The notes under the pieces: model-generated
The model's database searches: none
Seen by the model: the letters and a program-made list of their open reading frames with translations, nothing else
Told to the model about the DNA's origin: nothing
Part shown: piece by piece, positions 24,069-64,000 of the stretch
Position numbering within the stretch: the stretch's first letter is position 1
Layout of the letters: each line of letters starts with the position of its first letter
DNA from: Trichosphaerium sp. ATCC 40318
Taxonomy: Eukaryota; Protista; Tubulinea
NCBI GenBank assembly: GCA_038496445.1
Contig: JALMLS010000143.1
Location: forward strand, 448,508 to 512,507
DNA length: 64,000 bases
Direction: 5' to 3'
Made by a program: the position numbers and the translations under genes

Positions 24069-25590
24069 TCATACAAAAAAGTTGTTCTCAGCATGTGTTC
24101 TGTCTGTCTGAATAGGATGTCCACTTTCTTTTTCAAGTGCTTTTATGCATTCTTCCGTAATTGAAGTGCGTTCAAAGTATATTGTATGAATTGTGTTCAG
24201 TTCTTTTACACCTTCATCTGTCAAATGCTTGCACGATCTCACACTAAGTGTATGGACTCCTTTCAGAGCTCTTATTCCTTCATCCGTAACAAAAGTGTAA
24301 TCTAGGTGTAGGCTATGAACTCCTTTCAGTGTTTTGATCCCATCATCCGTCACATTTAAACACAGTGTAATGCTAAGCGAATGAATTCCTTTCAGAGCTC
24401 TTATTCCGTCATCTGTAACTGAAGTGTTAGTGAGATCAAGGGTATGAACTCCTTTTAAGGCTTTAATGCCTTCATCTGTCACATTCGGACAATCTGTAAG
24501 GTCAACCGCACGAGCACCTTGCAGTGCTTTCAATCCTTCGTTTGCTACTGCCGTGTTACTGAGATTTATCGTATGAACTCCTGACAACGCTTTAACACTT
24601 TTATCTGTTGCTAAAGTGCCAGCAAGGTCAATGGTATGAACTCCTTTCAACGCCTTTATCCCTTCATCTGTTATTCCAACACATTCTCTGAGGTATATGG
24701 TGTGAACTCCTGCTAGCGCTTTGATTCCTTCATCTGTAACTGAAGTGTAGTCAAGGGAAATGGTATGGACTCCTTTCAAGTCTTTGATGCCTTCATCCAC
24801 CACATGCATACAATTTGTAAGGTTAACATCGTAAGCACCTCGAAGTGCTTTGAGACCTTCATTTGCCACAGCTGTGTGGCTGAGATTAATTGTGTGAACT
24901 CCTGACAACGCCTTAACACCCTCATCTGTTGCTAAAGTACCCTCAAGGCTAATAGTATGACAACCTGCTAGTGCTTTTATCCCTTCATTTGTAAATTCTT
25001 CTGAATAGTCAAGGCCAATGGTATGAACTCCCGCCAGCGCTTTGAGTCCTTCATCTGTAACTACTGTGTAGTCAAGGCGAATGGTGTGTACTCCTGACAA
25101 CGCTTTGACTCCCTTGCTTGTAACATTTGTCCCATCCAGGTGAATGGTGTGAACGCCTTGTAGTGAACTTACACCTTCATCTGTTATACTCATACAATTG
25201 TTAAGGTCAATCGTGTGAACTCCTGATAGTGCTTTGATTCCCTCATCTCTAACCATTGTATTACCAAGACAAATTGTGCGAACACCAGCAAGTTCTTTTA
25301 GATTAGAACTATTAATAGAACCATCATTTGGATGTGGAGGTTTGTGTTCCATGTAGCTTATAGTAATTTTAGTATTGTTCATGACTCCTCTATACTGTTT
25401 TATCTTTAACATATCTTGAACACAAGCTATTTTAACCTCATAATATCCAACTACATCGTGAATGACATCAGCCATCAAGTGACATGATTGAGCAACAGAA
25501 AACTTATCAAGATTTTCTGTATGGCATAGAATACGTGCAATAACCTCGACTGGAAGATCCAGAATAGTACATTCTTTGACACCTGAGACT
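24069..25590 (-). CDS. Intronless F-box + leucine-rich-repeat protein (GVHTIDL..VTDEGIKAL repeats)
   Basis: >1.4 kb open frame with ~17 LRRs of 22-24 aa. The frame extends upstream of the tracked ORF through TILDLPVEVIARIL (F-box). No in-frame ATG found upstream of the F-box. Confidence 0.8.
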
Positions 25591-45362: not shown

Positions 45363-45699
45363 AGATTTCGTATTGTATCTCTTGTTCTCCTTCTGCTGTT
45401 TCTTTATCACCACTCTTGTAACGGGAGTATGTAAACTTTACAGGGAGCCCAGTAGCAAGAGAGTAAAGATTCCACTACGTAATAATAAGAGGTTTTGTCA
45501 AAACGATAAGAAAAAAAGGGGAAACACTCTTGAGCAAAAACTGTAAGTTTCGAAGTTGCTTGGTAAACGAAATGCGCCTCTTTCTGCCTAAAATACACAT
45601 TGAAATAAGCTCTTTGAAGCGGAGAAACAAAAATAGCGAAACCTAAGCTCATTCTTAGCTTGGTGAAGCACTGACTTTGGATTAAATTTTTCTGCCTTT

Positions 45700-48305
45700 G
45701 GACCAAAAAAGTCAACTATTTTATTGGCAGTGTGGTCGATAGGTTCAAATAGATTATCTTCAGCGTTACCTTGACGTATAAAAATTTCACTGATGTTCGT
45801 TGATAAGCAATTATAGCAAAGTTTATGAGACTGAATAAGAATTCTCAAGTTGATCTCATCTTTCGGAAAAATTCGTCCTATTAACGTTTCACGTAATTGT
45901 AAAGAGTTGCTGATTGGCTTATCAACGGCACAACGATGTCTGTGGTGCATTACCATACTGATGATGACCCATGTTATGGTCCTTCTTGTGGAGAAGTACG
46001 AAGTTGGTTTTTTAACGTAGAAATCCTTATAACGCGGTATTATCGTAGGTGCCCGTAATAGAATACTATCCTATGACAATCAGCACCGTAGCATACCATA
46101 AAACTGCTACATGCGCTTGTAATGCTCCTGAACGACTACAAGAGCCTCTACCAGCGCCAAAGGACAATATATTCCAATATGCCAATTTGACAACATTAAA
46201 AATACGCAACATAGGCATCAAGAGCGCCAATTTCGCCGAAATCAAGGTAAATACCACTATTTTGATGATTCTTAACGTGTTTGTAAGAAACTTCCTGGTT
46301 TGGCCCTCTTAGACATTTCAGGCAACGCAATAGACTCTATAGTACCACCTCCGAGTCTCCCTATATTCAACAGAGTAAATAGTTTCTCTAGGAAGGTGTT
46401 GAAGCGCTGACAACTTTGAAAAACCTCAACGTTTCACATAATTTGATAACATCGCTTCCTTCCAAAATATCATCTCTTACAGGGCTAAGAAAACTCTACA
46501 TCACCAGTAATAAGATTTCATACGTACCTTTGACTCTACTGAAGTTGACAGAACTCTCAGAGTTCGCTGTTGCTAATAATCCTTGGGTTTTCCCTCCGGA
46601 CTACATCATGTCTTCAAGTACGATTAGACAGTATTTGGTCTTCTCAGTATTCTGATGTATGTGTAGCTTTCAAGTATATCAAACAGGCGCTAGAGGTTGT
46701 CAAAGGTATGTTGGGTATTTATGAATGGGTATATAATTGTTTTCTTGTTGTATAGTGCCAGTAGTCGTTGACAAGCCAATGTATTCAGAAAGATTTAAGA
46801 AACTATTTAATTTACAAGTATTTTCTGACAAAACCTTTGATCTTGGAAGTACGACATTTCGCGTTCATTCTGTATGTCGTGCACCACAAAATTAGAAAAA
46901 GAACTTGCGGCTGACTATCTTAGGCATACTTGAAGTCAATTGAACCAGGACTTGAAACTAAAATGTCAAATCTTATTCAAAATGAAGAGATTGATGTCGA
47001 TCAGATGAGTGCTGTATTGACGTTCTTGTACGGAGGTAATAATTGAATACTATTTATCTTTTGGCAACTGGCATGTGCCAACTTATCAACAATTACGCAC
47101 ATCTCACATGACTTACATTTATCGAAAAAAATAGAAATTGTGAAATCCAATGATGTGTCAATACTCGAAGACTTTTCAACACTGTTATCCAGTACGTAAT
47201 TATAGAGACAAAAACGAGATGAAAGTATTTCAGTTCGCCTCGTTACTTTACTTTTAATTTGGTCGTAGAGGTTATCCCTAAAAGCATGGCTGATATTCCT
47301 CTTCAAAACAATGAAATCATGGCAAAGCGAAACAACATCAACCTGACGTAAGTGTACTCAGTATTTAGGTTCTTGATATTGTATAAGCTCCATCTCATCA
47401 TCTATTTAGTCTACAAACTACAGCTGGAGTGTTGCGAGATATAAAAGATGCATACGTGAAACATGAAGAAGCAACAAATTTTTGGCTTTCACCAGAACTT
47501 TTAATTCATAAAACGCTTCACGCCATGTACCTGGATGAATCAACAAAAGATGTGACTTTCACGTTTCCAAATATAACAGAAAAATATAAGGCACATCTTA
47601 TTGTGCTTTATATGTCATCAGAGATCTACAGCACAATGTTTTCTGGAAAGTACTCTGACAGTGAAAAAAGAGAATTTTTTGTACCAGACATTTCTTATGG
47701 TATCTTTGGACACATCTTGAAGTTCATGTAGTACGTTGCTTATGTATATCCTATCATACGTTAATATATCAATAGTGGTTTTGATATTGAATTTACAAGT
47801 GAGAATACAGTTGATTTACTTCAAGCTGCAAATCAGCTTCAACTGGTCAGGTGAGCGAAAAAGAGCAACTAATTTTCCCCGTTTAATTTTCTTCTCATTG
47901 CTCATTGCACACAAAGGTTACAACAAATGGCTGAAGAAGAAATATCTAAGTTTATAGACCATGATAATGCTGCAGGTAAGAATCTTTTAATTGGACTCCA
48001 GTGCTTTGATTAATTTTTTTCTTCTTTTTTTCTTAGGTCTTTTTGAGCTCTGTGATCGATTACATGTTCCTCAATTGAGAAAACAATGTTTACTTTATCT
48101 CATAAGACATGCTGGCGATGCAAGCTTAGATATGGATAAGTTCATGCCAGAAGAGTTGAAAAAAGTTGTTGATTCTGGTTGTGTTGATGTCACGCAATAC
48201 GAATATAAGACTGACTTCTCAGAAAACAGGGAAAAAATAAGAGAGATAGCATCCACCAGCGGAACCTTTCTTCATCATAACATCAACAGAAGGTTCAACT
48301 TCTGA
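45700..48305 (+). CDS. LRR + tandem BTB/POZ domain protein, multi-exon; start uncertain
   Basis: LRRs LKNLNVSHNLITSLP..LRKLYITSNKI; BTB-like VFSDKTF...FRVH and DVTFTF...YKAHLIVLYMSSEIYSTMFSG..ILKFM; BACK-like LRKQCLLYL. Confidence 0.75.
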
Positions 48306-49400
48306 ATTATCAGAAGTTCCTAAACCCAAAATTTTTATTCTTTTTCTTAGTAGAGCAGTAGTCAACTATTTAACAAGTCTACACCCCGAATAAAATATCC
48401 TCAATTTATATTACCGTTGTCAGCCAGAAAACTTTTCTCGCAGCAATTTTAGGTGTAGTAAACTTGTGAACTTCATGTACAACCCTGCCTTTAATTTAAC
48501 GGTACAGACTCAACGGCACGTGAGTAGACTGGGATGAAGGTTGAAGCTAATAACGCGAATTTACAAACTGTGGAAGTTACACAAAAATGTCGCTGTTCGC
48601 AATGTATCTACTACAACTACGTATGCGCCTCAACTAAATATCAATAATGTATGAGCGGTGTAACAAAAATACGTATTTTTATTTACACGTCCACTTGTGG
48701 GCCTATTTACAAAGTGGAACGGTTATTAGAGAAGTTCCTTATTTGTTTTCAACATGTCGTTTGTCTGGATTGTAGTCGTGGTTGGCGCATTGCGCTATGT
48801 TTATGAACTTTAAACCATTGATATAAGAACGAGTTATTGGAGATATCTCGTAAGAATGTTCTCACTACTTTTTAACGAAGAAAAAAAAGGCACTTCAAAT
48901 TTGGTTAAACTGTGATTACCCTTACGCATTACAGGGAAAACATTTCTCATATTGAATTCATAGCTAGCGCACTAGCGGAAGTATCTTGTAAAGTAACGCG
49001 CTAGTAACAGTTTCTCTTTAGAACAACATCATCCGTCCATAGTTGGTCTGACAGACGTTATCTAAAGAGTGGACTATTGCCGGAGAAATTGATAGTACGC
49101 GCCTCGCTTGCCACGTATCGCTTTATTTTATCTTGTCTGTGTGCTAAAGCATAAAACCTGTATTGAGAAGAAAGTTTACTGTCTCGCTCTGTCAGTATGT
49201 CGTGACATGGCAAACGCATATTAAATAACGGGTAATTAGTACCCGATACAGCCGAACCTTTCATTGCCAGGACCGTTACATCGGCGTAGTTGGTCTATCA
49301 AATCACAATTTATTAAAACTTGCAGAAAAAAATCACGTGAACACGTTATTGTACCAAAAAAGGACTCATTATACAAAACACAACACAACAGACGCAACTC

Positions 49401-50297
49401 ATGAACTTACTTATTCTGATTGCGCTAGCTTGTTTTATCGCCGTAACTACTGCACAATGGAACCCAAGGCACCCATCTTGGACTGACAGCTATTCTCGCG
49501 GCGGTAGATGCTGGTGCCGTTCTAGCTTCGATCACGACCTAGATGACATTACAAAAGTTTGGTATGTCATTAACGGCGTAAGAAGAAACATCAGAACAAT
49601 CTGTGAAGAACTCGAGCAGCACCCAAACTACGCAGCATTCAGAGATGGTACCGACCCACCTTACAATGACATTCAATGTGGAAATGGACCAGCAAACACT
49701 GCTGCTGATGAAACAGGTTGTCCTGGAAGAACCGATCTGGGACCAAGCGGATGTAATAACATTGGTGTCACGTGGGACACTACTTGGCTTCAAGGGCGAC
49801 CAATCTTCAACGGCGGCAGCAACACCTTTATTCTTCGCAAAGGTAACTCTAACGGATTTGCTCTTGACGGAGACAGTGGCGCAGCAAACGACCAAAATAT
49901 CTATCTTTGGCAATATGGAGCTTCAAACGTAAACCAACAATTTGAAGAGATCTCAATATCTGGTGGTTTTATCGCCCTCAGGAAGAAGAATACTAACCAT
50001 TGCTTGGACGGAGGTAACGGTGGTGGTAACGGACAGAATCTAAAGTTGTGGGCTTGTGGAACAAGCAACCAAAACCAACACTGGAGGAAGGTACAATAGT
50101 TAATTTTTTTTGCCTTTCAATCTAATTTTTTTGTGTCCAAGGTGTCTCTTGGCGGTGGTAAATATAGACTTGAAAAGAGAAATGCCCCTGCATACTCTAT
50201 CGATGGAGATGGTGGTGGAGCTAATGGACAAAACGTGTACTTGTGGAGTTCAAGTAACACAAACGGAAACCAACAATGGATTTTCGAGACTGTTTAA
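49401..50297 (+). CDS. Secreted protein: Cys-rich N-terminal domain + ricin-B (beta-trefoil) lectin, one intron
   Basis: Signal peptide MNLLILIALACFIAVTTA; SWTDSYS..CWC..FDH..YNDIQCGNGP..CPGR; three LDG..G..N.QN..LW....NQxW-type subrepeats. Confidence 0.8.
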
Positions 50298-50583
50298 TTT
50301 GTTATGCAATAAATTATTTTTAGAATTAATTGTGTAGATGCACGTTACATGGTTTGTTCCTTTCAGAACAGTAGGTGTTAACGATTTTGACTTGTATCAC
50401 TTGGAATGTTGTGATGATAATTTGTGAAGCTGAGTACTGAGAAAATCAAGCAAGCTGTTGGTTACAAGTTTTAGTTTTTTATTAGTTTATCTTTTCTTTT
50501 TTTTCTTTGTTTATTTACACAGATGAACGACGCAATGACCTTGTAGGTGTTATAGAAGCTTTTTTACGTCTTGTCAAACTAGT

Positions 50584-51319
50584 TTACATAAGCAACAATC
50601 CAGCAAATCCAGAAAACCCTTTGTTTATTTCGTACCTCAACTTTCGTTTTGCTTTTGTAAGCATAGACCTTTTATCTTTCCCTGAAGGCTTCCTTTGTGC
50701 TTTTTTGTGTGCAGAGGATACCTTCTTCATCATAGATGTCAAGCAAGGTTTAAACTTTGTATCAGAGGCAGATGTTTCGTAGAACTTCATATTATTTCTA
50801 TTAGCATATTCTTTGCCAGTTTCTAAAGGAACTTGTCTCTTCAGAATCAAGTCGCTCTTGTTCCCAATAAGAAAAACAGGCCTTGTTATACCCAACCTCT
50901 TTAAAATAGTGTTGTACATAGGTATCGCTGAGAATGATGCAGTACTTGTTATATCCTACAGTAGCATATCTTAGTCACGTGAAACTTTGAAGAAAAAAGA
51001 AAATGGCACGTGAAAATACTTAAACGTTTTTTTGCTTTTTGGTTTTTTAGGCTTATTTCGTACGTATACAAGAGCAATCCCTGAGGCTTCGCGTATGAGT
51101 TCCTTTTCATCATCTAATACTGCTAATACGTCTAATTCGCTTACATCGACTACTTCGTGTTCATGTGCTTTGGAACAGTCAAGAGACGCCAACGTTGTTT
51201 TACCTTTAGTAATATTAACCAGTTTTGATAGAAAAGAGCAACGAACCTGCGCCGGTCTCTCCTAGTAGTACAATGCTTATGAATGCGTCTGCTTCTATAC
51301 ATTTAACGTGCTTTGCCAT
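50584..51319 (-). CDS. Divergent Ras-superfamily small GTPase-like protein, 3 exons
   Basis: G1 IVLLGETGAGKTT, LVYDIT, G4 LIGNKSDL and G5 FYETSA; no DTAGQ switch II. Confidence 0.75.
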
Positions 51320-52660
51320 GTGTTGTGTTTTATGTGAGTAAGAAATAAAGAGGCAAGACTACGTTCTGTGAAATGAATTTGGCTTTTCTTGAGCCGTAGT
51401 ATTTTCAGATTATTACCATTATTTGAAGAAACTACAACCAGATTCATCGCATGACGTTTAGAGCTCCTTTTTTCTCGATTCAGTTTATTTGAAGTAATTC
51501 TTCTCTATCACACACGAGAAGGTGATCACGTGATATGTGATTTTACAGGTCATCCGCTGTTCGCTACTATACCGCTGGTGCATGTGAGGAATAAAAGTAA
51601 GAATGAACAAACAGTGGAACAAAACTACAATGCTTCCTTTTCTTGGCAGTTTTTGCAAGCGTTGTAGTAGACATAGACTACCAACTACTTTAACACAATA
51701 ATACTTATTGTAAAATAGAGTATGCTCACAAGACCTCTACCTATCTGTCAGTCATTACAATGTAGTATGAAGTATTTGCGTTAGTAATATTACGTGTACC
51801 AGTTGCCTGTACTGCAACCATTGCGCAATAATAAACTCATAGATACAAGAAGGAACTAAGTTGTACAACTAAGGTGTTTTCTTACGCTCATTGATGAAAT
51901 AGGCATTTAAAAGTATTAAATCATCAACCCTTGATATACTAGCTACTAAAGCGACAAGAGACAAGGGACAAAGGACTAATTCTGGTATGTACAAAACTTA
52001 TACACAATTTCTTTTTATTTGTTGAATCAGACAAGATCATGATTTGTATGATGACGTTTATTAGAGAATTTTTCGCTAAGCAGTTGAATGTGCTGCGGTG
52101 TAAGCACTGCATGCTTTGAATCTACACAGTAAGTATGAGAGCTTAATATAAACCTGTAGCCGTGAGAAAAAATAAATACGTTTTACTTTTTTATTATGAC
52201 GTTATTGTAAAATGTGAAAATCTTCTAGCTAGTTATTTTTGTTCATCATTTATACCTTGAAAGTGTATAAAGAGTAGTAGTGCATCGAACATGATTGTGC
52301 ACACTAAAACGTTAGTCGTGGCTCCGCAAAAAACGTCAAGTTCAGCTTATTGATCTTGATTAGCGATATAAAACGAGTTAACCGCTACAACAACTTATGC
52401 AACAAAACAGCCAGAAATCAACAAAAATGCCATTTCTCATATCTTGTTTTTTTTTTCATAAGTAGTACATTACTGTTTAAGCACTTGACCTGCTCTTAAC
52501 ATTACCTTTTTTGCTGAACAAGTATTTCCTATGATAATTGCATATAATGTACGTGCAAGATAATGAAATACATTAAATCATACAGTTTCAGGTGAGGCTG
52601 CTGTGTCAAACAGAGATCACTATCTCAAGTTGTATGAAGATGTGGTATGAGGAATAACGC

Positions 52661-55642
52661 CTACGAAAATGACTTGCTATTCCAAAAGTAATGCATAAAC
52701 AATGATGAGGAGGAACATGACGCTAGTATGAAAAAAAGGAAGGCAACAAAAATAGTCGTTCGTGTTTCTTTTTGGGCGTACTGACAGGAGAACCAACAGG
52801 AGAACCAACAGGCGCACTACTAACAGGTACTATGCTACTATGAGATGGAGTTATGGTAGTAGGGACGATTTGCGGCTCAGACGTTGGCGCAGCCGTCGGC
52901 GCAGTAGGAGCATCAGTGAGCGACACTGGGCTGCTACTAGGTTGCGCTGTAGGCGGTGCCGTTGGCATTGCTGTGGGCATTGCTGTAGGCGTTGCTGTAG
53001 GCGTTGCCGTTGGCATTGCTGTGGGCATTGCTGTTGGCGCTGCTGTGGGCATTGCTGTAGGCGTTGCCGTTGGCATTGCTGTTGGTATTGCCGTTGGTGT
53101 TTTGGTAGTTGGTGTCGATGTAGGCGTACTAGTAGGAGTCGATGTAGGTAAACTAGTAGGTACTATAGAAGGTACAGGTTCAGAAGGTACTTGTTCCTCT
53201 GTCAGAAGCCCTTAGATATTTTTCCACAACAAAAAGTTTTTCAGAGAAAAAAAATATTGCCGTACCTTCAAGCGTGAAGTTAACAACTGTAGGAGTATTG
53301 TCAACTACTGTTACTTCGATCGTTTGTGGAGTAAAACCGGTGATATTCTTGACTGTGAGTGTATGTACACCAGGGACCATAAGTCGTATGAACATGCCAG
53401 ACTAGAAGAGAAGTTAGAAAGAGGTCTAAGTACTTTTTTTAGTTGTTATGTACAGAATATATTTTTGTGTGATGTGTATTTCCTTGTAACTCAACGTATC
53501 CACCTTGAGTATTGATGGAATTACCATCTTTATCAAGGACAAAACCTCTTATGCCAGAGTTTTGAACTTGTCTTGCGTAGTTCAACAAAGCAGCTTTGTT
53601 ATCATCCCTACATTAAAAAAATTAGTGAATGCAAACAAACGCCAACAATTCTGGAAAAAGTGTTTGCAATGTTGCCTAATAACTATATACGACTTCAATA
53701 CAGTGACCATTTCACAATAATGTTCCAGCCGATTCAGCAATTGTGATTCGAAAAAAAAAAACCATAATGTAAAATTTTTTTGTTTACAATTTAAAAGTGG
53801 TTCTCCACGAGAACAAAGAGAAAAGCACTGAAGTAGGTAAAAATATAAATATAAATATGATAGTGTTTGTGTACCAATATCCTGGCAGCTCACTTGCAGG
53901 TGGCCACTTAGAAATCTTGGATACCTAAATCATTATAATTAATATCCAAAAATACGATTTCGTTTCACTGTTAACATAAAAACAAATAAAACCACTTACT
54001 TCTATCGTTGTTTCCATACAATCAAGGAACAAGTAGTTCCAATCTTGCATACCACCATTCAAAGCATACCAATCAGCTCCATTGGTAATACCTGTTACAA
54101 ACAAAAAGTTCAATACTTAGCAAAGCAAAGAAAATAATTCATACCATCACGGAAATATCTATTACTCATCATGGCAGGATTCAAGTGAGCGTAAGCTTTA
54201 GATACTTTTATGAATATGGCATCATCAGGAGTAGCAGAATACACACTTGTAGAGCGGGTGTTACCTTTTTGGTAGAGTGTTAATACTCCTACAACAAAAA
54301 AAACCCAACAAAGTCAATAAAGACTTACTGTCGTAAGGGTAATTAACAACTAGATCGCCACCATGTAGATTTGCTGATAGCGTCCATTTAAAGTCTTCAG
54401 ATTGTAAATAATCCATAACGAGCTTTACTTCATGTGCACGTCCAGATGAAGACCAGCGAGGATCACTAAAATGAACTAAGCACCAAAAACACAAATAACG
54501 CTCTTAAAGTTAATGTACGTGTATTGATCAGGGAACCCTCTGTTCAAGTCAACACCTTCTGAATTTGCTCTTTGCTGAAGATCGAACCCTAATATTTATG
54601 AGCAATTGCTGTATTCTTTGATTATCACGTGATTTAGCTTTTAAAATAACAACAATTCTTTTTTGTCTGGAGGCATTGTTTGAAATATAGACGCTCATCA
54701 CTTACCGTCTGGGTTCATTGTTGGTATGACGAACACATGAACATTGTCGATGAGGTCTTTGACCTCTGTATTGTTATGGTATTCGTTGGCTAACATCTTT
54801 GCGAAATTAATCAATAATTCTCTACTAACAACTTCATCACCTATAGTAATATAACACATTAATATCAAAGGCGCAGATTTATAATATTCTGAGATTTCAG
54901 CTGTTTTTGTTGAATAGAAAAAGAATTAAGATTAAAAATACAAAAACAAAAAAGCGCGGGTTATTTTTAGTGAAAACTCCTTTTAAAACGTTTCAAGCGT
55001 CGTTTGGATACTCTCAAAAAGTACATATACATACCGTGCATATTACCAATATATTTAAAGTCAGGTTTAGCTTCTGTGCGGACACCAGGCTACGAAAAAT
55101 GATTTAACTTTATTAGCAGAAAAATAAAAAAATTTTCTTGCGTCACATCGATGACACGTTGATGAAGGAGCTAATTTTATACTGTTGTCTAGCGTACGTT
55201 GTTGCTAAATTCAATACCATAGATATCTACGCCTGCTTTACTTTTACCAATAGTGAAGCGTTTAGCAAATTCTGAATGCTGTTGTTCTATCGCTAGGAGT
55301 ATATCCCCAATAGCAGCGTTGCTTACGTAGCCTACTTTTAGAGTAGGGCTCCAGCGTTGTTCAACTTCACGTTTTATCTCGTAATGGTGCTCAATTTTTT
55401 TAATGGCATCTTCTGACGCCTCTACAACAATGCTTCGCTTTTCTTTGCTTATAATTGAAAAATCTGCCGAAGATTGCGGCAAAGGAACACCAAATGGTAT
55501 TGTTACGCGATAGAGGTCTGATGACGTGTTAATAAGCAAAAAAATAATTTTGGACATTCGTACTTGCGCCTTTTGTCGTTTCGGCTATGGCTACAAGCGC
55601 TAAACACGCTACAAGAACGTATGGTAGCAACGATTTCGTCAT
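52661..55642 (-). CDS. Zinc carboxypeptidase M14 (CPD/N/E-like) with signal peptide and Pro/Thr-rich tail, multi-exon
   Basis: [52 protein letters not shown] and [20 protein letters not shown]; signal [20 protein letters not shown]; 3' end approximate. Confidence 0.9.
52930..53180 (-). repeat. Coding 12-bp tandem repeat ([12 protein letters not shown] mucin-like stalk)
   Basis: Tandem GTTGGCATTGCT-like units encoding [16 protein letters not shown]... Confidence 0.85.
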
Positions 55643-56592
55643 ATCACCGCTTGTAGTCTCGTCACGTTGATTTGAGCTGAGATGCCTAAAATAATTTAAG
55701 TTTAATTCACAAAACCATTGTTCTTCCAGGGTTTGCCCTGGAAGATCACCAGCCGTTTAAAACAACATCAAACACTGTTTACATGTTGAGTGACATAATG
55801 TCTGGCTTAACAATAGCCACTGTTGTTCGTTTTTATCAACTAGTACGCTTTCTTACCAGCAATTATGTCAGGAAGTTCATTTCTCCACGATTATGGCTAT
55901 ATTATGCTCTATGCAGCACTGACGCTACTGATTGGCATGGCTAGTACCATTATTCCATTTATTATAAAGCAACGCGGTCCTATGACCGATCCAAAGGCTC
56001 TGTTATGGTTCTTTCTATCTCTTACATTTAAATTCTCGGCGGGCGTTCTAATAAGCGCGGGTACAGTGCATATGGCAGGAGATAGCTTGTGTACGGTTTT
56101 TTCTGATGATAAAAAATTATTAACCTTATTTTCTGAAACTCAGCGTGTTTTCTCACCTCATATTTGCCCAAATAGCAAACTGGATAGAATACTCAAACTG
56201 TACTGGGCCACATTTTTCAGGTAATTGAAAGAAATAAATCACCCATGTCTCAAGACCTAAAGAAACTCTTTAGAGCCTTCATGTGATGATTTTGTACCTA
56301 TGGTTAACTCTGAGAACAATACTGTGTATTTTTGTGTTGGTCCATGCTCATCGTACCCTTGGCAAGTCTTTTTTTTCACTTCTTTGTTTTTCATGGTGCG
56401 TTGTCTTGTTTTCTGACATTTCGTTGTAGGTGGTTGGCGTGTATTGGTGGTAGTATTATTATTGTAGCTACACTTGAAGCGCTTTCTCCTCATGAACATG
56501 CTGGTAAGTAGCCTGAATCGACATAGTATCACGTGAACAAGTTGATGAAAGTTCCTCGTTTTTTACATTTTTTATCTTTTTCTTTTGCTCAT
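53480..56592. repeat. Arm 1 of a long inverted duplication
   Basis: Reverse complement of 60907-64000; identical ORFs mirrored (55189-55557 versus 61928-62296; 54261-54494 versus 62988-63221). Confidence 0.95.
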
Positions 56593-57492
56593 CCTCTAAC
56601 CAACCTTTTTCGCAGATTTTTTTGGTGGTCTTGATGAACTTAATGGGTTATTGCGATCACATGCTAGTGTCCAGTATGACGCTGTATTGGGAGGGTCCGA
56701 AAAACGAAGACGAGTACACCCGCTTCTTGGCCACTCTTTTGTGTTGTTGTTGGCCCTTGTAGTTCATTCTATATTGGCTGGATTCTCTCTAGGCGCATCA
56801 TTAAAAGAAACAGGGGAGAGTTGGGGAATTTTCGGGGCCATAGTGGCTCACAAGGTAAATCACGATAACTTATTTTTTGTTGCTTAAAGTTTTGTTAAGG
56901 GTTTTGCTGGATATGCTCTTGGTGTGAGCCTGGTAACTTCTAAAGTTCCATTTTGGGTATGTAAATAGAATATCTTTCTTATTTTGGTTAATCTAAATGT
57001 AAGCATTGGGGAGCAATTATGAGTGCAGCATTCTCCATAAGCACACCTACAGGTACCTTTTTTTTTCTTTTTTGAAACAATAAATCTTCCCCGTGGCTGT
57101 ACACAGACATGACTGCGGGTTTTCGTGTATTTTGAACCTTGGATGTTTGTTTGCATATTTTTCATATCTTAATAAACGGAACCATGGCGTGGTTAATCAT
57201 TGTATCGAACTGAGGATTTTTTGTGTTTTCTTTAATTGTTTTTTCTGATTACTGGGTAGGTATTATTATTGGTGGCACTTTGCTCAGTTTATTGGATGGA
57301 CCAGCTAGGTTGTTAACAGAAGCTATTCTTCTTGGGCTTGCTTCTGGGACGTTCATTTATATTGGACTTGTTGAAATGTTTTTGGCGGATATTTTCGTTC
57401 AAATGAGACGTGGTGTTTGGAGTGCTTTACTACATGGATTAGTAGCTTTCTTGGGATTTATAGCAATGTCTACACTTGCTATATGGATATAA
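55865..57492 (+). CDS. ZIP (SLC39) zinc/iron transporter, multi-exon
   Basis: FSAGVLISAGTVHM, LALVVHSILAGFSLG, AIVAHKFVKGFA and GLASGTFIYIGLVEM. Confidence 0.9.
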
Positions 57493-58244
57493 ACTTCGTA
57501 TTATAGAATAACCTTATTACATAAGTAATAAATAACAATTGTACAATTTCAAACACTTCTTTTGTTATTGTTGAGCCTCTCAAGTAGCGCAATTTTGAAG
57601 AATTTGTAAGCATTTCCTGTATAAATGAGGTCTTCGTTGTCATGTAAAAACCATGTGTTTTTCTTGGCAACTTTTTCCAATGACACCGCAATGACCCATC
57701 GAAAGATAGTGCGCAGGTGATTACACCCTTACTATTGTGGATACATAAAAGTACTGACTGGTAAAACGTAGTCATTTTGGTGATAAGTGGAGGTGGATAG
57801 GCTAACCAGCTAAAAAAATATTAAGCAGAAACTGTCACAGTACTAATGAAGCTATTATGTAAACCGAAAGATATTTAATGTTTGTGGCTGGTGTTAACCG
57901 ATTCAGCAATTTGTATCAGGCTTACTCAGAACAGTAACACGTCTTCATACTAAAGTAGAAAGCACACTTGTTGGTCAACAAACATTCGTATTTGTGCTAT
58001 TCGTTCAAACTGAATCAAGAAACACGTGGCTTGTAAGGAACTACAGTTTTACTTGCCATACAGTCTCCTTTTGTATTGGTTGATAAGAGACACACATTTG
58101 AAGGATTGGCGTTTGTTTAGCAAGCTCTCACTAGCAGTAAAGAGACTTGAGTTCAGTGTAACGTACAATGTCAGACAACAAGGTAATTTCGTACGGGTTA
58201 AAAAACTTCAAACTGTTTACTCCCATTAGCAAAGTTCGCTAGAG

Positions 58245-58915
58245 GTGTATGAGCCATGTCACTTATTGCGGCTTCCTGTTGAGCTACATCTTTATATCAT
58301 TGATCTTTCATACTGTCGATTGTATACCTTGTGGCCTCTTTTATCAAAGTACACAGCAACAACAACAAGATTTGATGACGAACTTAACAAACATGGCAAA
58401 TGGTGTAGACATCATCTGAAATAGGAGTGATTGGGAGAAAAAACACGAGACGTCATCGCGGATTTTGTTTTGTTAAGCAAGAGCAAGAGTTTGTAAAAAG
58501 TAAAAAAGAAGGAGAATGTAAAGAGTGGCACAACTTTAGACTGAGAATCCAGGAGCACTACGTAAATGATGTTAAAGTAGAGCAAATACAGTGGCATGAA
58601 AATGGTAGGATGCGTACTAAGAGACACTATATTAACGGTAAAGTTACTGGAGAAGTTATGGAGTGGCATGATAATGGTATGATATCGAGTAAGAGGCACT
58701 ATCTTAACGGTAAAGTTATCGGAGAAGTCATGGAGTGGCATGATAATGGCCAGTTGAAAATGCATGGGTTTTACATATGTAGTCAAATGCATAAAAATAC
58801 AATGAAATATTGGTGTGAAGATGGCGAAGTAGCTTATGAAAGCAAGAGTGTATGGAAACGAGCAACGCCAGTTTATAACAATTCAAGAGATAAGAGTAGA
58901 CAGTACCTTGTCTGA
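58245..58915 (+). pseudogene. Disrupted F-box-like/MORN-variant paralog
   Basis: VYEPCHLLRLPVELHLY...LWPLLSKYTA..RFD...KHGKW aligns with the 4565-5623 gene. The start is GTG instead of ATG and there is a frameshift/stop at ~58420 before the MORN repeats. Confidence 0.75.
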
Positions 58916-59089
58916 ACATATATTATAGCTAGTACTTAACGTAGCTTTCATTCTTAACCTTGATTTTACTTTTTTGTGAGTGTATTGTTTACTTTCAAAA
59001 TGGACTCATTTTCTCGCAATATTGTCTCTGAATTAAAACACATGCTCGACACGTGATTATTGAAAACACTGCGCATAGTGTACTTTTAT

Positions 59090-59982
59090 TTATTCATAAT
59101 CTTTAAACCATGTTTCTTCTTCAAGTTGTTCTACTATTTGACCTTGTTTATTCCACTTTAACATGTCTTCTTTCAATCTTCCATTATCATAAAATCCCCA
59201 CTTCTTCACTTGTCCACTGTAGTACCACTCCTTATACTCTCCATGCCTATTTCCTTTCGCATACTTACATTGTATTTCAATTTTACCATTATTGTGCCAG
59301 TGGTTGACCTTTCCTTCTAGGTTTCCATTAACATAAAACCCATCTTTCTTCAATCGTCCACTTTCATACCACACTTTGTATTCTCCTTCTTGTTTACCAT
59401 TTGAGTAAGTACGTTGTTTCCTCAATTGACCAGTTATGTACCACTTCTTATACTCTCCTTCTTGTTTGCCATTAACATAAAAACATTTTTTCTTCAATTG
59501 TCCGTTATTGAACCACTCCGTATAATCTCCTTGTCTCTTACAACCACTAGTGTAATTAGCTTGGATCCACAAAGTTCCATTTCGATGCCAATTCTTACAT
59601 TCCCCTTCTTGTCTATCATTGACATAATAACTCTGTTCCGTGAGTTGTCCATTGTCATACCACTCTTTATAGACTCCTTCTGATTTACCATCTATGTACT
59701 TACACTTTACCCATTGTTTGCCATTCGGATGCCACTCATTGTATTCACCTTGACGTTTGCCATGACTTAAGTACTCTTGACATAATACTCTTGATGTACT
59801 TGAGCTTCTTTTAATCCATTTTCCATGCTTTTTTAAGTCAGAATCAAAGCGTGTTATCATTGCTGTTCGTTTTGATAACATTGGCCATTTCAAATACATT
59901 TCAAAGTCTAATTCTATTATATCTAGTTGTAACTCAACAGGCAGGTGTACTAGATTTAAGAATTGATCTTTTTTGCTCTCAT
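59090..59982 (-). CDS. Intronless F-box-like/MORN-variant repeat protein
   Basis: ~9 MORN_2 repeats; the frame extends upstream through LVHLPVELQL; the ATG at 59982 is 1 nt out of frame across an A6 run (error or mutation). Confidence 0.8.
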
Positions 59983-60208
59983 TTTTCTAATTACACATTA
60001 GAGATTGCGTAAATCGCAAGTATATTGTACGTACTGTGCGTTTAGCCATTTGTAGCCCGTTATTGTCTGGAGATTTATTGCGTTTAATGATTTTAATCTT
60101 GGTGGCTCCACAAAGGTACTTGATACCTCGCTGTTGTTATTTCGTTAGTGCTGGCTTTTCTAGTAAACTATGTTGTATCTGACTTAAGGGGGCAGTAACT
60201 TAACACAG

Positions 60209-60819
60209 TTAGCATACCTATACCCGGACAACTTAACAGGAAAGGTACAAGTGATCCCTCAATAGACGCAAACTGTGATACCAGATCACAGTTTACTAGG
60301 CAACATGAGGCAACAAAACAAAAAAAAACATCACTAAAAAAGCAAAACAAACTCGCTGCCAATGGTCAATGGTGGTAAAGCCTTAGACTACCTATACCGG
60401 TTGTTTATTTAGAAAATGATACAATCAGGGCATTGGAGGCCATTGTACACATGTCCATGACAGTGGCCATCATCATAACACCTGTTTCTAGAAATGTTGA
60501 CAAACGATGGCTCAAAAACAATATGAGCACACTCAAAACACTCCTTGTTGTGGCACAAATGGCTACAATCAATCTTTCCCCTGTTGATACCACTCCAAAC
60601 ATAGTACTTGAGGTCTCCTTCAAGATCATGCACCTCATCATAAATGGTAACCCCATATTTGGCATACCTAGCGAGATGATGCAACTTGTAATTCTTGTAC
60701 CCAAGTAAAGCTCTAGGATACCCTGAATGATCCAAGTTCTTGTTGAAAGTGAGCACAAGACACCCATTGTCTGCAATAAAATAGTCAACACAAGTAAATA
60801 GTTAGACTACCTATACCCG
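60209..60819. repeat. Three dispersed direct repeats (TTAGACTACCTATACC core)
   Basis: Exact 16-mer at 60383-60398 and 60802-60817; variant TTAGCATACCTATACCCG at 60209-60226. Confidence 0.8.
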
Positions 60820-60900
60820 AGTATAGAGAAAAAAAAAAAACCCTAATCTATCAAAAAAAAAAATACCTTTTCTAACAGCATTGCGCATTAAAAGACCCAT
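60409..60900 (-). CDS. His-Cys box (His-Me finger, I-PpoI-like) homing-endonuclease-type protein, 2 exons
   Basis: Exon 60900-60867, GT-AG intron 60866-60771 and exon 60770-60409 give 131 aa: MGLLMRNAVRKDNGCL...GYP...CSHLCHNKECFECAHIVFEPSFVNISRNRC...CHGH...CPDC. Confidence 0.8.
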
Positions 60901-60906
60901 TTTTAG

Positions 60907-61626
60907 TGAGCAAAAAAAAAGATAAAAATGTAAAAAACGAGGAACTTTCATCAACTTGTTCACGTGATACTATGTCGATTCAGGCTACTTACCAGCATGT
61001 TCATGAGGAGAAAGCGCTTCAAGTGTAGCTACAATAATAATACTACCACCAATACACGCCAACCACCTACAACGAAATGTCAGAAAACAAGACAACGCAC
61101 CATGAAAAACAAAGAAGTGAAAAAAAAGACTTGCCAAGGGTACGATGAGCATGGACCAACACAAAATACACAGTATGTTCTCAGAGTTAACCATAGGTAC
61201 AAAATCATCACATGAAGGCTCTAAAGAGTTTCTTTAGGTCTGAGACATGGGTGATTTATTTCTTTCAATTACCTGAAAAATGTGGCCAGTACAGTTTGAG
61301 TATTCTATCCAGTTTGCTATTTGGGCAAATATGAGGTGAGAAAACACGCTGAGTTTCAGAAAATAAGGTTAATAATTTTTTATCATCAGAAAAAACCGTA
61401 CACAAGCTATCTCCTGCCATATGCACTGTACCCGCGCTTATTAGAACGCCGCCGAGAATTTAAATGTAAGAGATAGAAAGAACCATAACAGAGCCTTTGG
61501 ATCGGTCATAGGACCGCGTTGCTTTATAATAAATGGAATAATGGTACTAGCCATGCCAATCAGTAGCGTCAGTGCTGCATAGAGCATAATATAGCCATAA
61601 TCGTGGAGAAATGAACTTCCTGACAT
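60907..61626 (-). pseudogene. Truncated, frameshifted duplicate of the ZIP transporter 5' half
   Basis: Same start (MSGSSFLHDY); frameshift at FKFSA; copy ends inside an intron. Confidence 0.7.
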
Positions 61627-61843
61627 AATTGCTGGTAAGAAAGCGTACTAGTTGATAAAAACGAACAACAGTGGCTATTGTTAAGCCAGACATTATGTCA
61701 CTAACATGTAAACAGTGTTTGATGTTGTTTTAAACGGTGGTGATCTTCCAGGGCAAACCCTGGAAGAACAATGGTTTGTGAATTAAACTTAAATTATTTT
61801 AGGCATCTCAGCTCAAATCAACGTGACGAGACTACAAGCGGAT

Positions 61844-64000
61844 ATGACGAAATCGTTGCTACCTACGTTCTTGTAGCGTGTTTAGCGCTTGTAGCCATAG
61901 CCGAAACGACAAAAGGCGCAAGTACGAATGTCCAAAATTATTTTTTTGCTTATTAACACGTCATCAGACCTCTATCGCGTAACAATACCATTTGGTGTTC
62001 CTTTGCCGCAATCTTCGGCAGATTTTTCAATTATAAGCAAAGAAAAGCGAAGCATTGTTGTAGAGGCGTCAGAAGATGCCATTAAAAAAATTGAGCACCA
62101 TTACGAGATAAAACGTGAAGTTGAACAACGCTGGAGCCCTACTCTAAAAGTAGGCTACGTAAGCAACGCTGCTATTGGGGATATACTCCTAGCGATAGAA
62201 CAACAGCATTCAGAATTTGCTAAACGCTTCACTATTGGTAAAAGTAAAGCAGGCGTAGATATCTATGGTATTGAATTTAGCAACAACGTACGCTAGACAA
62301 CAGTATAAAATTAGCTCCTTCATCAACGTGTCATCGATGTGACGCAAGAAAATTTTTTATTTTTCTGCTAATAAAGTTAAATCATTTTTCGTAGCCTGGT
62401 GTCCGCACAGAAGCTAAACCTGACTTTAAATATATTGGTAATATGCACGGTATGTATATGTACTTTTTGGAGTATCCAAACGACGCTTGAAACGTTTTAA
62501 AAGGAGTTTTCACTAAAAATAACCCGCGCTTTTTTGTTTTTGTATTTTTAATCTTAATTCTTTTTCTATTCAACAAAAACAGCTGAAATCTCAGAATATT
62601 ATAAATCTGCGCCTTTGATATTAATGTGTTATATTACTATAGGTGATGAAGTTGTTAGTAGAGAATTATTGATTAATTTCGCAAAGATGTTAGCCAACGA
62701 ATACCATAACAATACAGAGGTCAAAGACCTCATCGACAATGTTCATGTGTTCGTCATACCAACAATGAACCCAGACGGTAAGTGATGAGCGTCTATATTT
62801 CAAACAATGCCTCCAGACAAAAAAGAATTGTTGTTATTTTAAAAGCTAAATCACGTGATAATCAAAGAATACAGCAATTGCTCATAAATATTAGGGTTCG
62901 ATCTTCAGCAAAGAGCAAATTCAGAAGGTGTTGACTTGAACAGAGGTTCCCTGATCAATACACGTACATTAACTTTAAGAGCGTTATTTGTGTTTTTGGT
63001 GCTTAGTTCATTTTAGTGATCCTCGCTGGTCTTCATCTGGACGTGCACATGAAGTAAAGCTCGTTATGGATTATTTACAATCTGAAGACTTTAAATGGAC
63101 GCTATCAGCAAATCTACATGGTGGCGATCTAGTTGTTAATTACCCTTACGACAGTAAGTCTTTATTGACTTTGTTGGGTTTTTTTTGTTGTAGGAGTATT
63201 AACACTCTACCAAAAAGGTAACACCCGCTCTACAAGTGTGTATTCTGCTACTCCTGATGATGCCATATTCATAAAAGTATCTAAAGCTTACGCTCACTTG
63301 AATCCTGCCATGATGAGTAATAGATATTTCCGTGATGGTATGAATTATTTTCTTTGCTTTGCTAAGTATTGAACTTTTTGTTTGTAACAGGTATTACCAA
63401 TGGAGCTGATTGGTATGCTTTGAATGGTGGTATGCAAGATTGGAACTACTTGTTCCTTGATTGTATGGAAACAACGATAGAAGTAAGTGGTTTTATTTGT
63501 TTTTATGTTAACAGTGAAACGAAATCGTATTTTTGGATATTAATTATAATGATTTAGGTATCCAAGATTTCTAAGTGGCCACCTGCAAGTGAGCTGCCAG
63601 GATATTGGTACACAAACACTATCATATTTATATTTATATTTTTACCTACTTCAGTGCTTTTCTCTTTGTTCTCGTGGAGAACCACTTTTAAATTGTAAAC
63701 AAAAAATTTTACATTATGGTTTTTTTTTTTCGAATCACAATTGCTGAATCGGCTGGAACATTATTGTGAAATGGTCACTGTATTGAAGTCGTATATAGTT
63801 ATTACGCAACATTGCAAACACTTTTTCCAGAATTGTTGGCGTTTGTTTGCATTCACTAATTTTTTAATGTAGGGATGATACAAAGCTGCTTTTGTTGAAC
63901 TACGCAAGACAAGTTCAAAACTCTGGCATAAGAGGTTTTGTCCTTGATAAAGATGGTAATTCCATCAATACTCAAGGTGGATACGTTGAGTTACAAGGAA
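61844..64000 (+). pseudogene. Duplicate of the M14 carboxypeptidase gene (3'-partial, frameshifted as assembled)
   Basis: Same exons as 52661-55642; 1-nt deletions in the signal-peptide exon (~61863) and at ~62945. Confidence 0.65.

Follow-up and report, generated by a model that had tools for sequence, protein, structure and literature searches.

A truncated I-PpoI-type nuclease gene in Trichosphaerium sp. ATCC 40318 probably belongs to a family of small, TTAA-bounded, Kolobok-like elements

INTRODUCTION

His-Cys box nucleases are textbook residents of group I introns in rDNA. I-PpoI falls in a eukaryote-only group of 62 fungal sequences (Jablonska et al., PMC5714182), and the His-Cys box genes of myxomycete rDNA introns can themselves contain spliceosomal introns (PMC9548176). 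Members of the Kolobok superfamily of transposons duplicate a TTAA target site and, unlike piggyBac, have 5'-RR...YY-3' termini; KolobokP, reported from animals only, always combines a DDD/E transposase with an I-PpoI-like nuclease (PMC9587614). No other published link between His-Cys box nucleases and transposons is known to us. I-PpoI cleavage leaves TTAA 3' overhangs, and cutting at the end junctions has been proposed for the KolobokP nuclease (PMC9587614).

Here we analyze a 64,000-nt stretch of the Trichosphaerium genome (the window; contig JALMLS010000143.1, positions 448,508 to 512,507). An initial annotation, made from the sequence alone, had described a free-standing, intron-containing gene for a 131-aa His-Cys box nuclease at 60409-60900, outside any rDNA group I intron, and had explained it as either a domesticated nuclease or the core of an undescribed small mobile element. 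We conclude that 60188-60906 (minus strand) is probably the 3' 719 nt of a small TTAA-bounded, Kolobok-like element whose only gene is the nuclease.

Like KolobokP, their nearest published relative, the elements described here are DNA transposons that carry an I-PpoI-like nuclease and show the TTAA and RR/YY hallmarks of Kolobok. Unlike KolobokP, they are 1.7 to 2.4 kb long, lack a transposase, and have a nuclease gene split by a spliceosomal-type intron; KolobokP also has long terminal direct repeats with inverted repeats of their own, whereas here there are simple inverted repeats and motifs of only 16 to 38 nt. The encoded proteins share with I-PpoI-type rDNA enzymes the catalytic His, the metal-binding Asn, and two Cys/His zinc clusters, and I-PpoI is their best match. 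However, the genes are dispersed and multicopy rather than fixed at one conserved homing site, and the full-length proteins have an unrelated N-terminal exon of about 80 aa, unlike rDNA His-Cys box enzymes. A TTAA site, small nonautonomous size, and short inverted repeats are also features of piggyBac-type TTAA MITEs, but these have CCC...GGG termini in place of the GGG...CCC found here, and MITEs normally lack a conserved coding gene. In the literature that we searched, we found no description of a nuclease-only form of a Kolobok-like element.

RESULTS

The nuclease domain resembles I-PpoI

60409-60770, minus strand: exon 2, with the entire His-Cys box nuclease core; about 120 codons and a stop (PF05551 and I-PpoI matches)

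The 115-aa ORF at 60409-60756 (minus strand) matched PF05551 (zf-His_Me_endon) in a Pfam profile search with 36.2 bits (E 8e-9), against a curated cut-off of 27 bits. The I-PpoI chains were the sole meaningful PDB sequence matches to exon 2, with an alignment spanning SHLCHN, the next Cys and His, the metal-site VN, and the following Cys; I-PpoI was also the best match when a ten-paralog profile was compared with the PDB (E 1e-5). The catalytic His (I-PpoI H98) and the metal-binding Asn (N119) correspond to H70 and N91 of the paralog alignment and are invariant in 10 paralogs. Among the ten exon-2 peptides, columns C3, C72, C77, H82, C97, C103, and C116 are invariant and H106 is nearly so. The zinc clusters correspond to C41, C100, C105, and H110 and to C125, C132, H134, and C138 of I-PpoI, numbering that was assigned by position outside the HMMER-aligned core. 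The initial annotation had seen an I-PpoI His-Cys box with a second C/H zinc cluster and with equivalents of the catalytic His and metal-binding Asn intact, and had named the zf-His_Me_endon profile as a check; the box, both zinc clusters included, is intact, and the profile match exceeds the cut-off.

The AlphaFold model of exon 2 had a mean pLDDT of 80.7. Foldseek placed I-PpoI at the top, but weakly (E 0.044), and VIA aligned the model to I-PpoI with Z 5.9 and an rmsd of 3.6 Å over 91 residues (chain residues 39-141). The VIA runner-up was I-HmuI (Z 5.5), followed by Smad MH1 and NFI domains, all of them His-Me finger folds. The sequence comparisons clearly identify exon 2 as an I-PpoI-type His-Cys box nuclease, and the predicted fold may lend this assignment moderate support.

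Neither exon 2 nor the ten-paralog alignment gave a match in a word-index search of proteins. A HMMER search based on the family profile retrieved 1,406 cluster representatives at a threshold of E≤1e-3, of which 40 reached E≤1e-10 and none E≤1e-30, so the blank word-index result reflects a limit of sensitivity. These outside relatives, from NCBI, JGI, ENA, and Logan, are small proteins of 110 to 250 aa with the same core (best E 3e-21); the closest scored about 90 bits, and all that we inspected were unnamed proteins. PF05551 clusters of similar size occur in Ascomycota and Rotifera in the protein Atlas. Judging from these profile matches, small I-PpoI-like proteins outside rDNA are common but uncharacterized.

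The 131-aa model begins within a longer exon

60771-60866, minus strand: 96-nt GT-AG phase-1 intron, with GT at 60866 and AG at 60771 (position and phase as in paralogs)
60867-60906, minus strand: exon 1 remnant, the last 11-13 codons, L-K-M-G-L-L-M-R-N-A-V-R-K (compared with C408, C54, C133, C76, and C297)

The exon 1 piece at 60867-60900 (34 nt) and exon 2 (362 nt) together make 396 nt, or 131 codons plus a stop. The exons can be joined only by splicing, because the exon 1 frame runs into a stop at 60811, inside the intron. In 11 of 11 paralogs examined, the window copy included, the exon 2 frame has no in-frame ATG, and exon 2 starts straight after the AG, in a phase common to all copies and with two codons ahead of the first zinc Cys. 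Since copies that are merely 32 to 37% identical to the window protein have the intron too, it appears to be old and shared. The predicted 96-nt intron, proposed initially from the GT-AG boundaries, therefore has comparative support: its splice arithmetic holds, and ten other paralogs share its position and phase.

In contigs C408, C76, and C297, exon 1 is 79 to 81 codons long; it begins MDNPGELLARLP and ends ...LKLGLLMRN..R, followed by the GT donor. No Pfam match was found for exon 1 of the intact paralogs. Homology of the window to paralog exon 1 reaches exactly 60906, and the ATG at 60898-60900 is aligned with the second Leu of the paralog L-K-L-G-L-L. The 131-aa ORF thus starts at an internal codon of a longer exon. 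Measured against its paralogs, the window copy is without some 70 N-terminal codons, and the 131-aa model is evidently not the native gene, which is predicted to have two exons and to encode a protein of roughly 200 aa. The splicing arithmetic of the 131-aa gene was right, but not its completeness or its start codon, as the ATG is internal and only a 3' fragment is present. The initial annotation had also reported that the frame stays open upstream to a duplication breakpoint; it is open to 60907, and the paralogs have a longer exon 1.

A dispersed family with TTAA and inverted-repeat ends

C408 element: 2,055 nt, inverted-repeat ends GGGTGC... at both ends
C76 element: 1,717 nt, inverted-repeat ends GGGCGTCCTC and GGGCGTTCTC
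C54 element: 2,443 nt, inverted-repeat ends GGGTGCGGTGACT and GGGTGCAGTAACT
C408:15677-16374: intact nuclease copy
C76:85012-85712: intact nuclease copy
C297:24841-25508: intact nuclease copy

Six-frame searches over the whole genome (70 Mb, 642 contigs) gave 28 matches to exon 2, with 21 matches above the PF05551 cut-off. The paralogs whose existence the initial annotation had left to a genome-wide search thus number at least 21 to 28 dispersed copies, many of them frameshifted, cut, or internally deleted. Exon 1 is frameshifted in C54 and C133, lies about 1 kb from exon 2 in C44, and is missing from C378, while the C66 copy has stop codons. Between subfamily members, dN is about 0.3 and dS is saturated, which indicates long-term purifying selection on the nuclease; dN/dS was 0.07 to 0.34 where computable.

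The C408, C76, and C54 elements, full-length but diverged relatives of the window copy, all have the arrangement expected of Kolobok, TTAA-GGG...CCC-TTAA, with short inverted repeats of 6 to 13 nt, and the window 3' end reads CCC-TTAA. From the ATG to the 5' end of the element, the distance in these three is constant (319 to 330 nt), and homology extends to that end, inverted repeat included, which implies that gene and element end diverged together. The C408 element contains no ORF over 128 aa and none longer than the two nuclease exons; the full-length elements are too small for a transposase. Read together, the element ends form a near-palindrome centered on TTAA. This end pattern occurs at 6 sites genome-wide, 5 of them at copies of the nuclease element and the remaining one on C197. 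We found no half-site common to the elements in the flanks outside the TTAA.

Several other features were observed in and around family members. A hairpin about 170 to 230 nt upstream of the nuclease ATG is conserved in C54 (L022:6612-6679), C408, and C76; it has 24-nt arms that are 96% complementary and a 20-nt loop, with changes between copies that are partly compensatory, and it may serve as a promoter or bind a protein. At C1:1159411, C54:242236, and C173:119120, a second nuclease subfamily is represented by one and the same 132-aa exon 2 frame. Exon 1 survives only in the C1 copy; at C54:242236 and C173:119120, the upstream sequence is replaced from mid-intron by a common 190-nt segment, and at C173:119120 the poly(A) end of a LINE lies directly upstream. 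Intron-less relatives with open frames of 290 to 425 aa occur at C382:19362, C382:21616, and C57:9766, with a central His-Cys box and a coiled-coil-like C-terminal tail; the two on C382 lie 2 kb from each other and are oppositely oriented. Both the window (24100-25500) and the DNA beside the C54 copy (L022:2474-3616) contain members of a leucine-rich-repeat gene family whose unit is 21 residues long (GVHTIDL...TSVTDEG).

The window copy ends at a TTAA that is unoccupied elsewhere

60184-60187, no strand: TTAA target site at the element 3' junction (C118 empty-site comparison; TTAA ends of relatives)
60188-60200, minus strand: 3' terminal inverted repeat, GGGGGCAGTAACT on the plus strand, the element ending in CCC-3' (matches C54 ends GGGTGCGGTGACT and GGGTGCAGTAACT)
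60188-60408, minus strand: 3' untranslated and subterminal region (near-identical copies on C54, C77, C9, and C160)

Window positions 45564-60188 are collinear with C118:184967-170690 at 96 to 99% identity, and the similarity ends at the TTAA. The window reads ...ctgccccc TTAA gtcagatac and C118 reads ...gtgc TTAA gtcagatac, with a single TTAA and no nuclease sequence at the homologous site. An empty site had been named initially as something to compare in related strains; a counterpart exists within the same genome, at the 3' junction only. Because the 5' junction is lost, the comparison covers half of the empty site, with the TTAA at one end of the window copy. The collinear C118 segment of about 15 kb represents a haplotig or else a recent segmental duplication; it is useful for comparing filled and empty sites.

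A 274-nt segment (60181-60454), which takes in the final 15 codons of the gene and its 3' untranslated region, recurs at 95 to 98% identity on C54, C77, C9, and C160, and 3' fragments that are 72 to 88% identical occur at about 15 further loci. Since copies are 5' truncated, we first considered the window-type 3' repeat as a LINE/SINE-like tail. This was rejected on the evidence of the TTAA and inverted-repeat ends; the C297 and C378 copies do lie in a LINE tail.

Genes with MORN repeats adjoin the element at window 58490-59899, including an ORF at 59090-59899 (minus strand) with 7 MORN_2 repeats (86.5 bits); a 72-nt periodic repeat at 58571-58749 lies on the strand opposite to this ORF. The MORN and RNR neighbors had prompted us to consider a giant-virus origin, for which there was no support: a search of IMG/VR viral contigs found no relative.

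The 5' part is cut off at a junction with inverted DNA

60907-64000, no strand: inverted copy of 53480-56591 that reaches the end of contig C19 (99.3% identity over 3,113 nt)

At 60907 the sequence switches into an inverted copy of DNA from within the window, and the 5' parts of the element are therefore missing. The arms of this 3.1-kb inverted duplication are separated by a spacer of 4.3 kb. The junction falls in an intron of a host gene carried by the duplicated segment: the native copy reads ...gctcat-cctctaacc...cag into the next exon, and the junction copy reads ...gctca-ctaaaaatggg. A three-way comparison with C118 gave the following private differences.

Junction arm, 60907-64000: 18 indel columns, 5 substitutions
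Native arm, 53480-56591: 1 indel column, 0 substitutions
C118 segment: 3 indel columns, 17 substitutions

From this pattern, the junction arm appears to be a copy of the native arm with read-like noise rather than an older, diverged duplicate. The junction could have arisen through a recent fold-back rearrangement, or it could come from a chimeric read by which the contig end was extended. If the read is chimeric, a full-length element may be present at this locus on the actual chromosome. A search of the rest of the assembly for an orphan exon 1 of the window type found none. The donor of the host gene (60993) is in phase 1, as is the nuclease acceptor (60771), and if the junction is real, an in-frame host-nuclease fusion transcript would be possible. 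That the distal arm differs mostly by private indels is itself suggestive of a chimeric or poorly polished contig end or of a very recent fold-back inversion.

A repeated motif and LINE tails as carriers

60802-60817, minus strand: motif copy 1, in the intron (equivalents in the introns of C408, C54, and C133)
60383-60398, minus strand: motif copy 2, GGTATAGGTAGTCTAA, 11 nt past the stop codon (38-nt, 76% direct repeat with the intron copy)
60209-60224, minus strand: motif copy 3, GGTATAGGTATGCTAA (motif search)

A short motif with the core GGTATAGGTAnnCTAA, also given as GGTATAGGTAGTCTAAC and often followed by a T-rich stretch and TTGAC, is repeated in the family. The window has three matches where 0.06 would be expected, and the whole genome has 17, compared with 1 for the reversed control; 15 of the 17 sites are on contigs with studied element copies or 3' fragments, and the others are on C171 and C260. 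The motif recurs, always in one orientation, at three positions: some 140 nt upstream of the ATG (C408 and C54), in the intron, and past the stop. Exon 2 of the window is thereby bracketed by a 38-nt direct repeat. C297 and C378 have the variant CCTATAGGnCCTCGAA, and the C1/C54/C173 group has units similar to GTGCTTAAGCG.

The nuclease copies on C297 and C378 sit within the 3' tail of a LINE with a poly(A) end (C297:24500-26800). An 843-nt deletion has left the C378 copy with half of its intron and without exon 1 or the upstream region. Both deletion endpoints fall in motif copies, which suggests that the motif is recombination prone. The motif may also be a target of the nuclease. Its possible resemblance to the I-PpoI site, with AGGTAG in common, is a lead only.

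Searches for a transposase, rRNA, or group I intron

Rfam searches for rRNA or a group I intron gave no match in 54000-64000 at E≤1 and none in the whole window at the gathering score, so the nuclease gene lies outside both, as first described. The earlier statement that no transposase is visible in or beside the window gene also stands. A transposase with matching ends was not found either; the resident piggyBac-like and the C54-adjacent MULE-like transposons were compared, and their ends are unrelated. The resident piggyBac-like transposon was rejected as a mobilizer since its inverted repeats, TATCTCTTTCT, do not match the element ends. This family (C84:134696-136822; also C405, C65, and C124) is 2,127 nt long and has four copies that are 99.4 to 99.7% identical; TTAA flanks are not obvious at its boundaries in the alignment. 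Classification of the elements as piggyBac-derived MITEs was rejected as well, since they do have TTAA but end in GGG...CCC instead of CCC...GGG.

Upstream of the C54 copy lie MULE-like ORFs that we considered as a fused or adjacent transposase; they proved to be part of a distinct transposon of 2.7 kb, which has inverted repeats of its own. This transposon (L022:3737-6459; C54:205736-208458) has a weak WRKY-type zinc-finger match and inverted repeats that start GTGATTGG; it lies 60 nt from the C54 nuclease element, and there are five copies that are 98 to 100% identical, along with older families at 68 to 70%.

DISCUSSION

The window copy would have inserted at the TTAA that is unoccupied in C118, and its 5' inverted repeat, upstream region, and about 70 exon 1 codons would have been lost where the sequence switches, at 60907, into inverted DNA from 4.3 kb away. 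What is left as the 131-aa ORF has an internal Met as its first codon, lacks its own promoter, and is unlikely to be a functional unit. The complete free-standing gene first described is thus a 3' fragment without the element's 5' end, cut at a possibly chimeric junction. The suggestion that the locus holds the core of a small mobile element came close; it was "undescribed" only in part, as KolobokP already links this type of nuclease to Kolobok. For the mechanism, we favor a model in which a Kolobok-type DDD/E transposase acting in trans moves the elements by cut-and-paste at TTAA, and the nuclease is a selected helper, kept because the double-strand breaks it makes would help the element to be copied. 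Its target would probably be the TTAA-centered palindrome or the repeated motif of the element. Against trans mobilization, no transposase with matching ends was found and the inverted repeats are short (6 to 13 nt); the C297 and C378 copies in the LINE 3' tail indicate that the gene may move as a cassette.

A bolder view, which we regard as unlikely but worth serious consideration, is that this is transposase-free eukaryotic mobile DNA, present in TTAA elements and in LINE tails, whose sole mobility protein is an I-PpoI-type nuclease. The nuclease would cut either the TTAA beside the GGG/CCC ends or its own repeated motif, and spread would be by restriction-like cut-and-paste or by homing into other repeats. 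One specific proposal is that the nuclease is the mobility enzyme of the TTAA element: a homodimer would cut the TTAA beside each GGG/CCC end, freeing the element and opening TTAA targets with no need for a transposase. The absence of a transposase from every copy, the small size of the elements, and the purifying selection on the nuclease while the elements diverged to saturated dS all speak for this, as do the near-palindrome that the paired ends form around TTAA, an end pattern seen at six sites only (five at these elements, the sixth on C197), the TTAA overhangs left by I-PpoI, and the end-junction cutting proposed for KolobokP (PMC9587614). We nevertheless consider it improbable: a Kolobok transposase acting in trans would leave the same TTAA and RR/YY termini, and the flanks past the TTAA have no common half-site. 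It also counts against this proposal that we know of no biochemical precedent for integration by a His-Me nuclease. Another proposal makes the nuclease cassette itself the mobile unit, a free-standing homing gene that would insert copies of itself in repeats with its target motif and for which TTAA elements and LINE tails are mere carriers or landing sites. The occurrence of the nuclease gene in two kinds of carrier, the inverted-repeat elements and the poly(A)-ended LINE tail, keeps this proposal alive; the motif that each subfamily has upstream of the gene, in the intron, and past the stop, the two C378 deletion endpoints in motif copies, and the 38-nt direct repeat flanking exon 2 of the window also point to it. 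It is doubtful all the same, given the constant 319 to 330 nt between the ATG and the 5' inverted repeat in C408, C76, and C54, and no cassette-free carrier was identified.

Domestication as a stand-alone cellular gene for a 131-aa nuclease, the other explanation offered initially, now looks very improbable. The intact exon 2 frame, with all catalytic and zinc residues, and the presence of an ATG and GT-AG sites are what such a gene would have. The ATG, however, is at an internal Leu position of an exon 1 of about 80 codons and only 7 nt from the rearrangement junction, inside a host intron; the C118 site is empty, the family is multicopy and decaying, its relatives have TTAA and inverted-repeat ends, and the window copy has kept its 3' inverted repeat and TTAA. 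We see next to no chance that the locus is the remnant of a homing endonuclease gene that moved from an rDNA group I intron to another nuclear location. The His-Cys box family is classically encoded in rDNA introns, and spliceosomal introns are known in the myxomycete genes (PMC9548176), but Rfam gave no rRNA or group I match, and the flanks consist of transposon ends and an ordinary protein-coding neighborhood.

The window copy offers an insertion junction whose counterpart in C118 is empty; it is itself damaged, and the intact copies of its family are better material. Copies in this family degenerate as they lose 5' sequence or suffer deletions at the repeated motifs. If the nuclease is site specific, it would be a new small eukaryotic rare-cutter. 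Under the favored reading as Kolobok-like elements, the family is diverged, under selection, still moving, and bounded by TTAA, and, unlike KolobokP, its only gene is the nuclease. This raises the question of whether a homing-type nuclease may sustain a transposon-like element, alone or as a helper.
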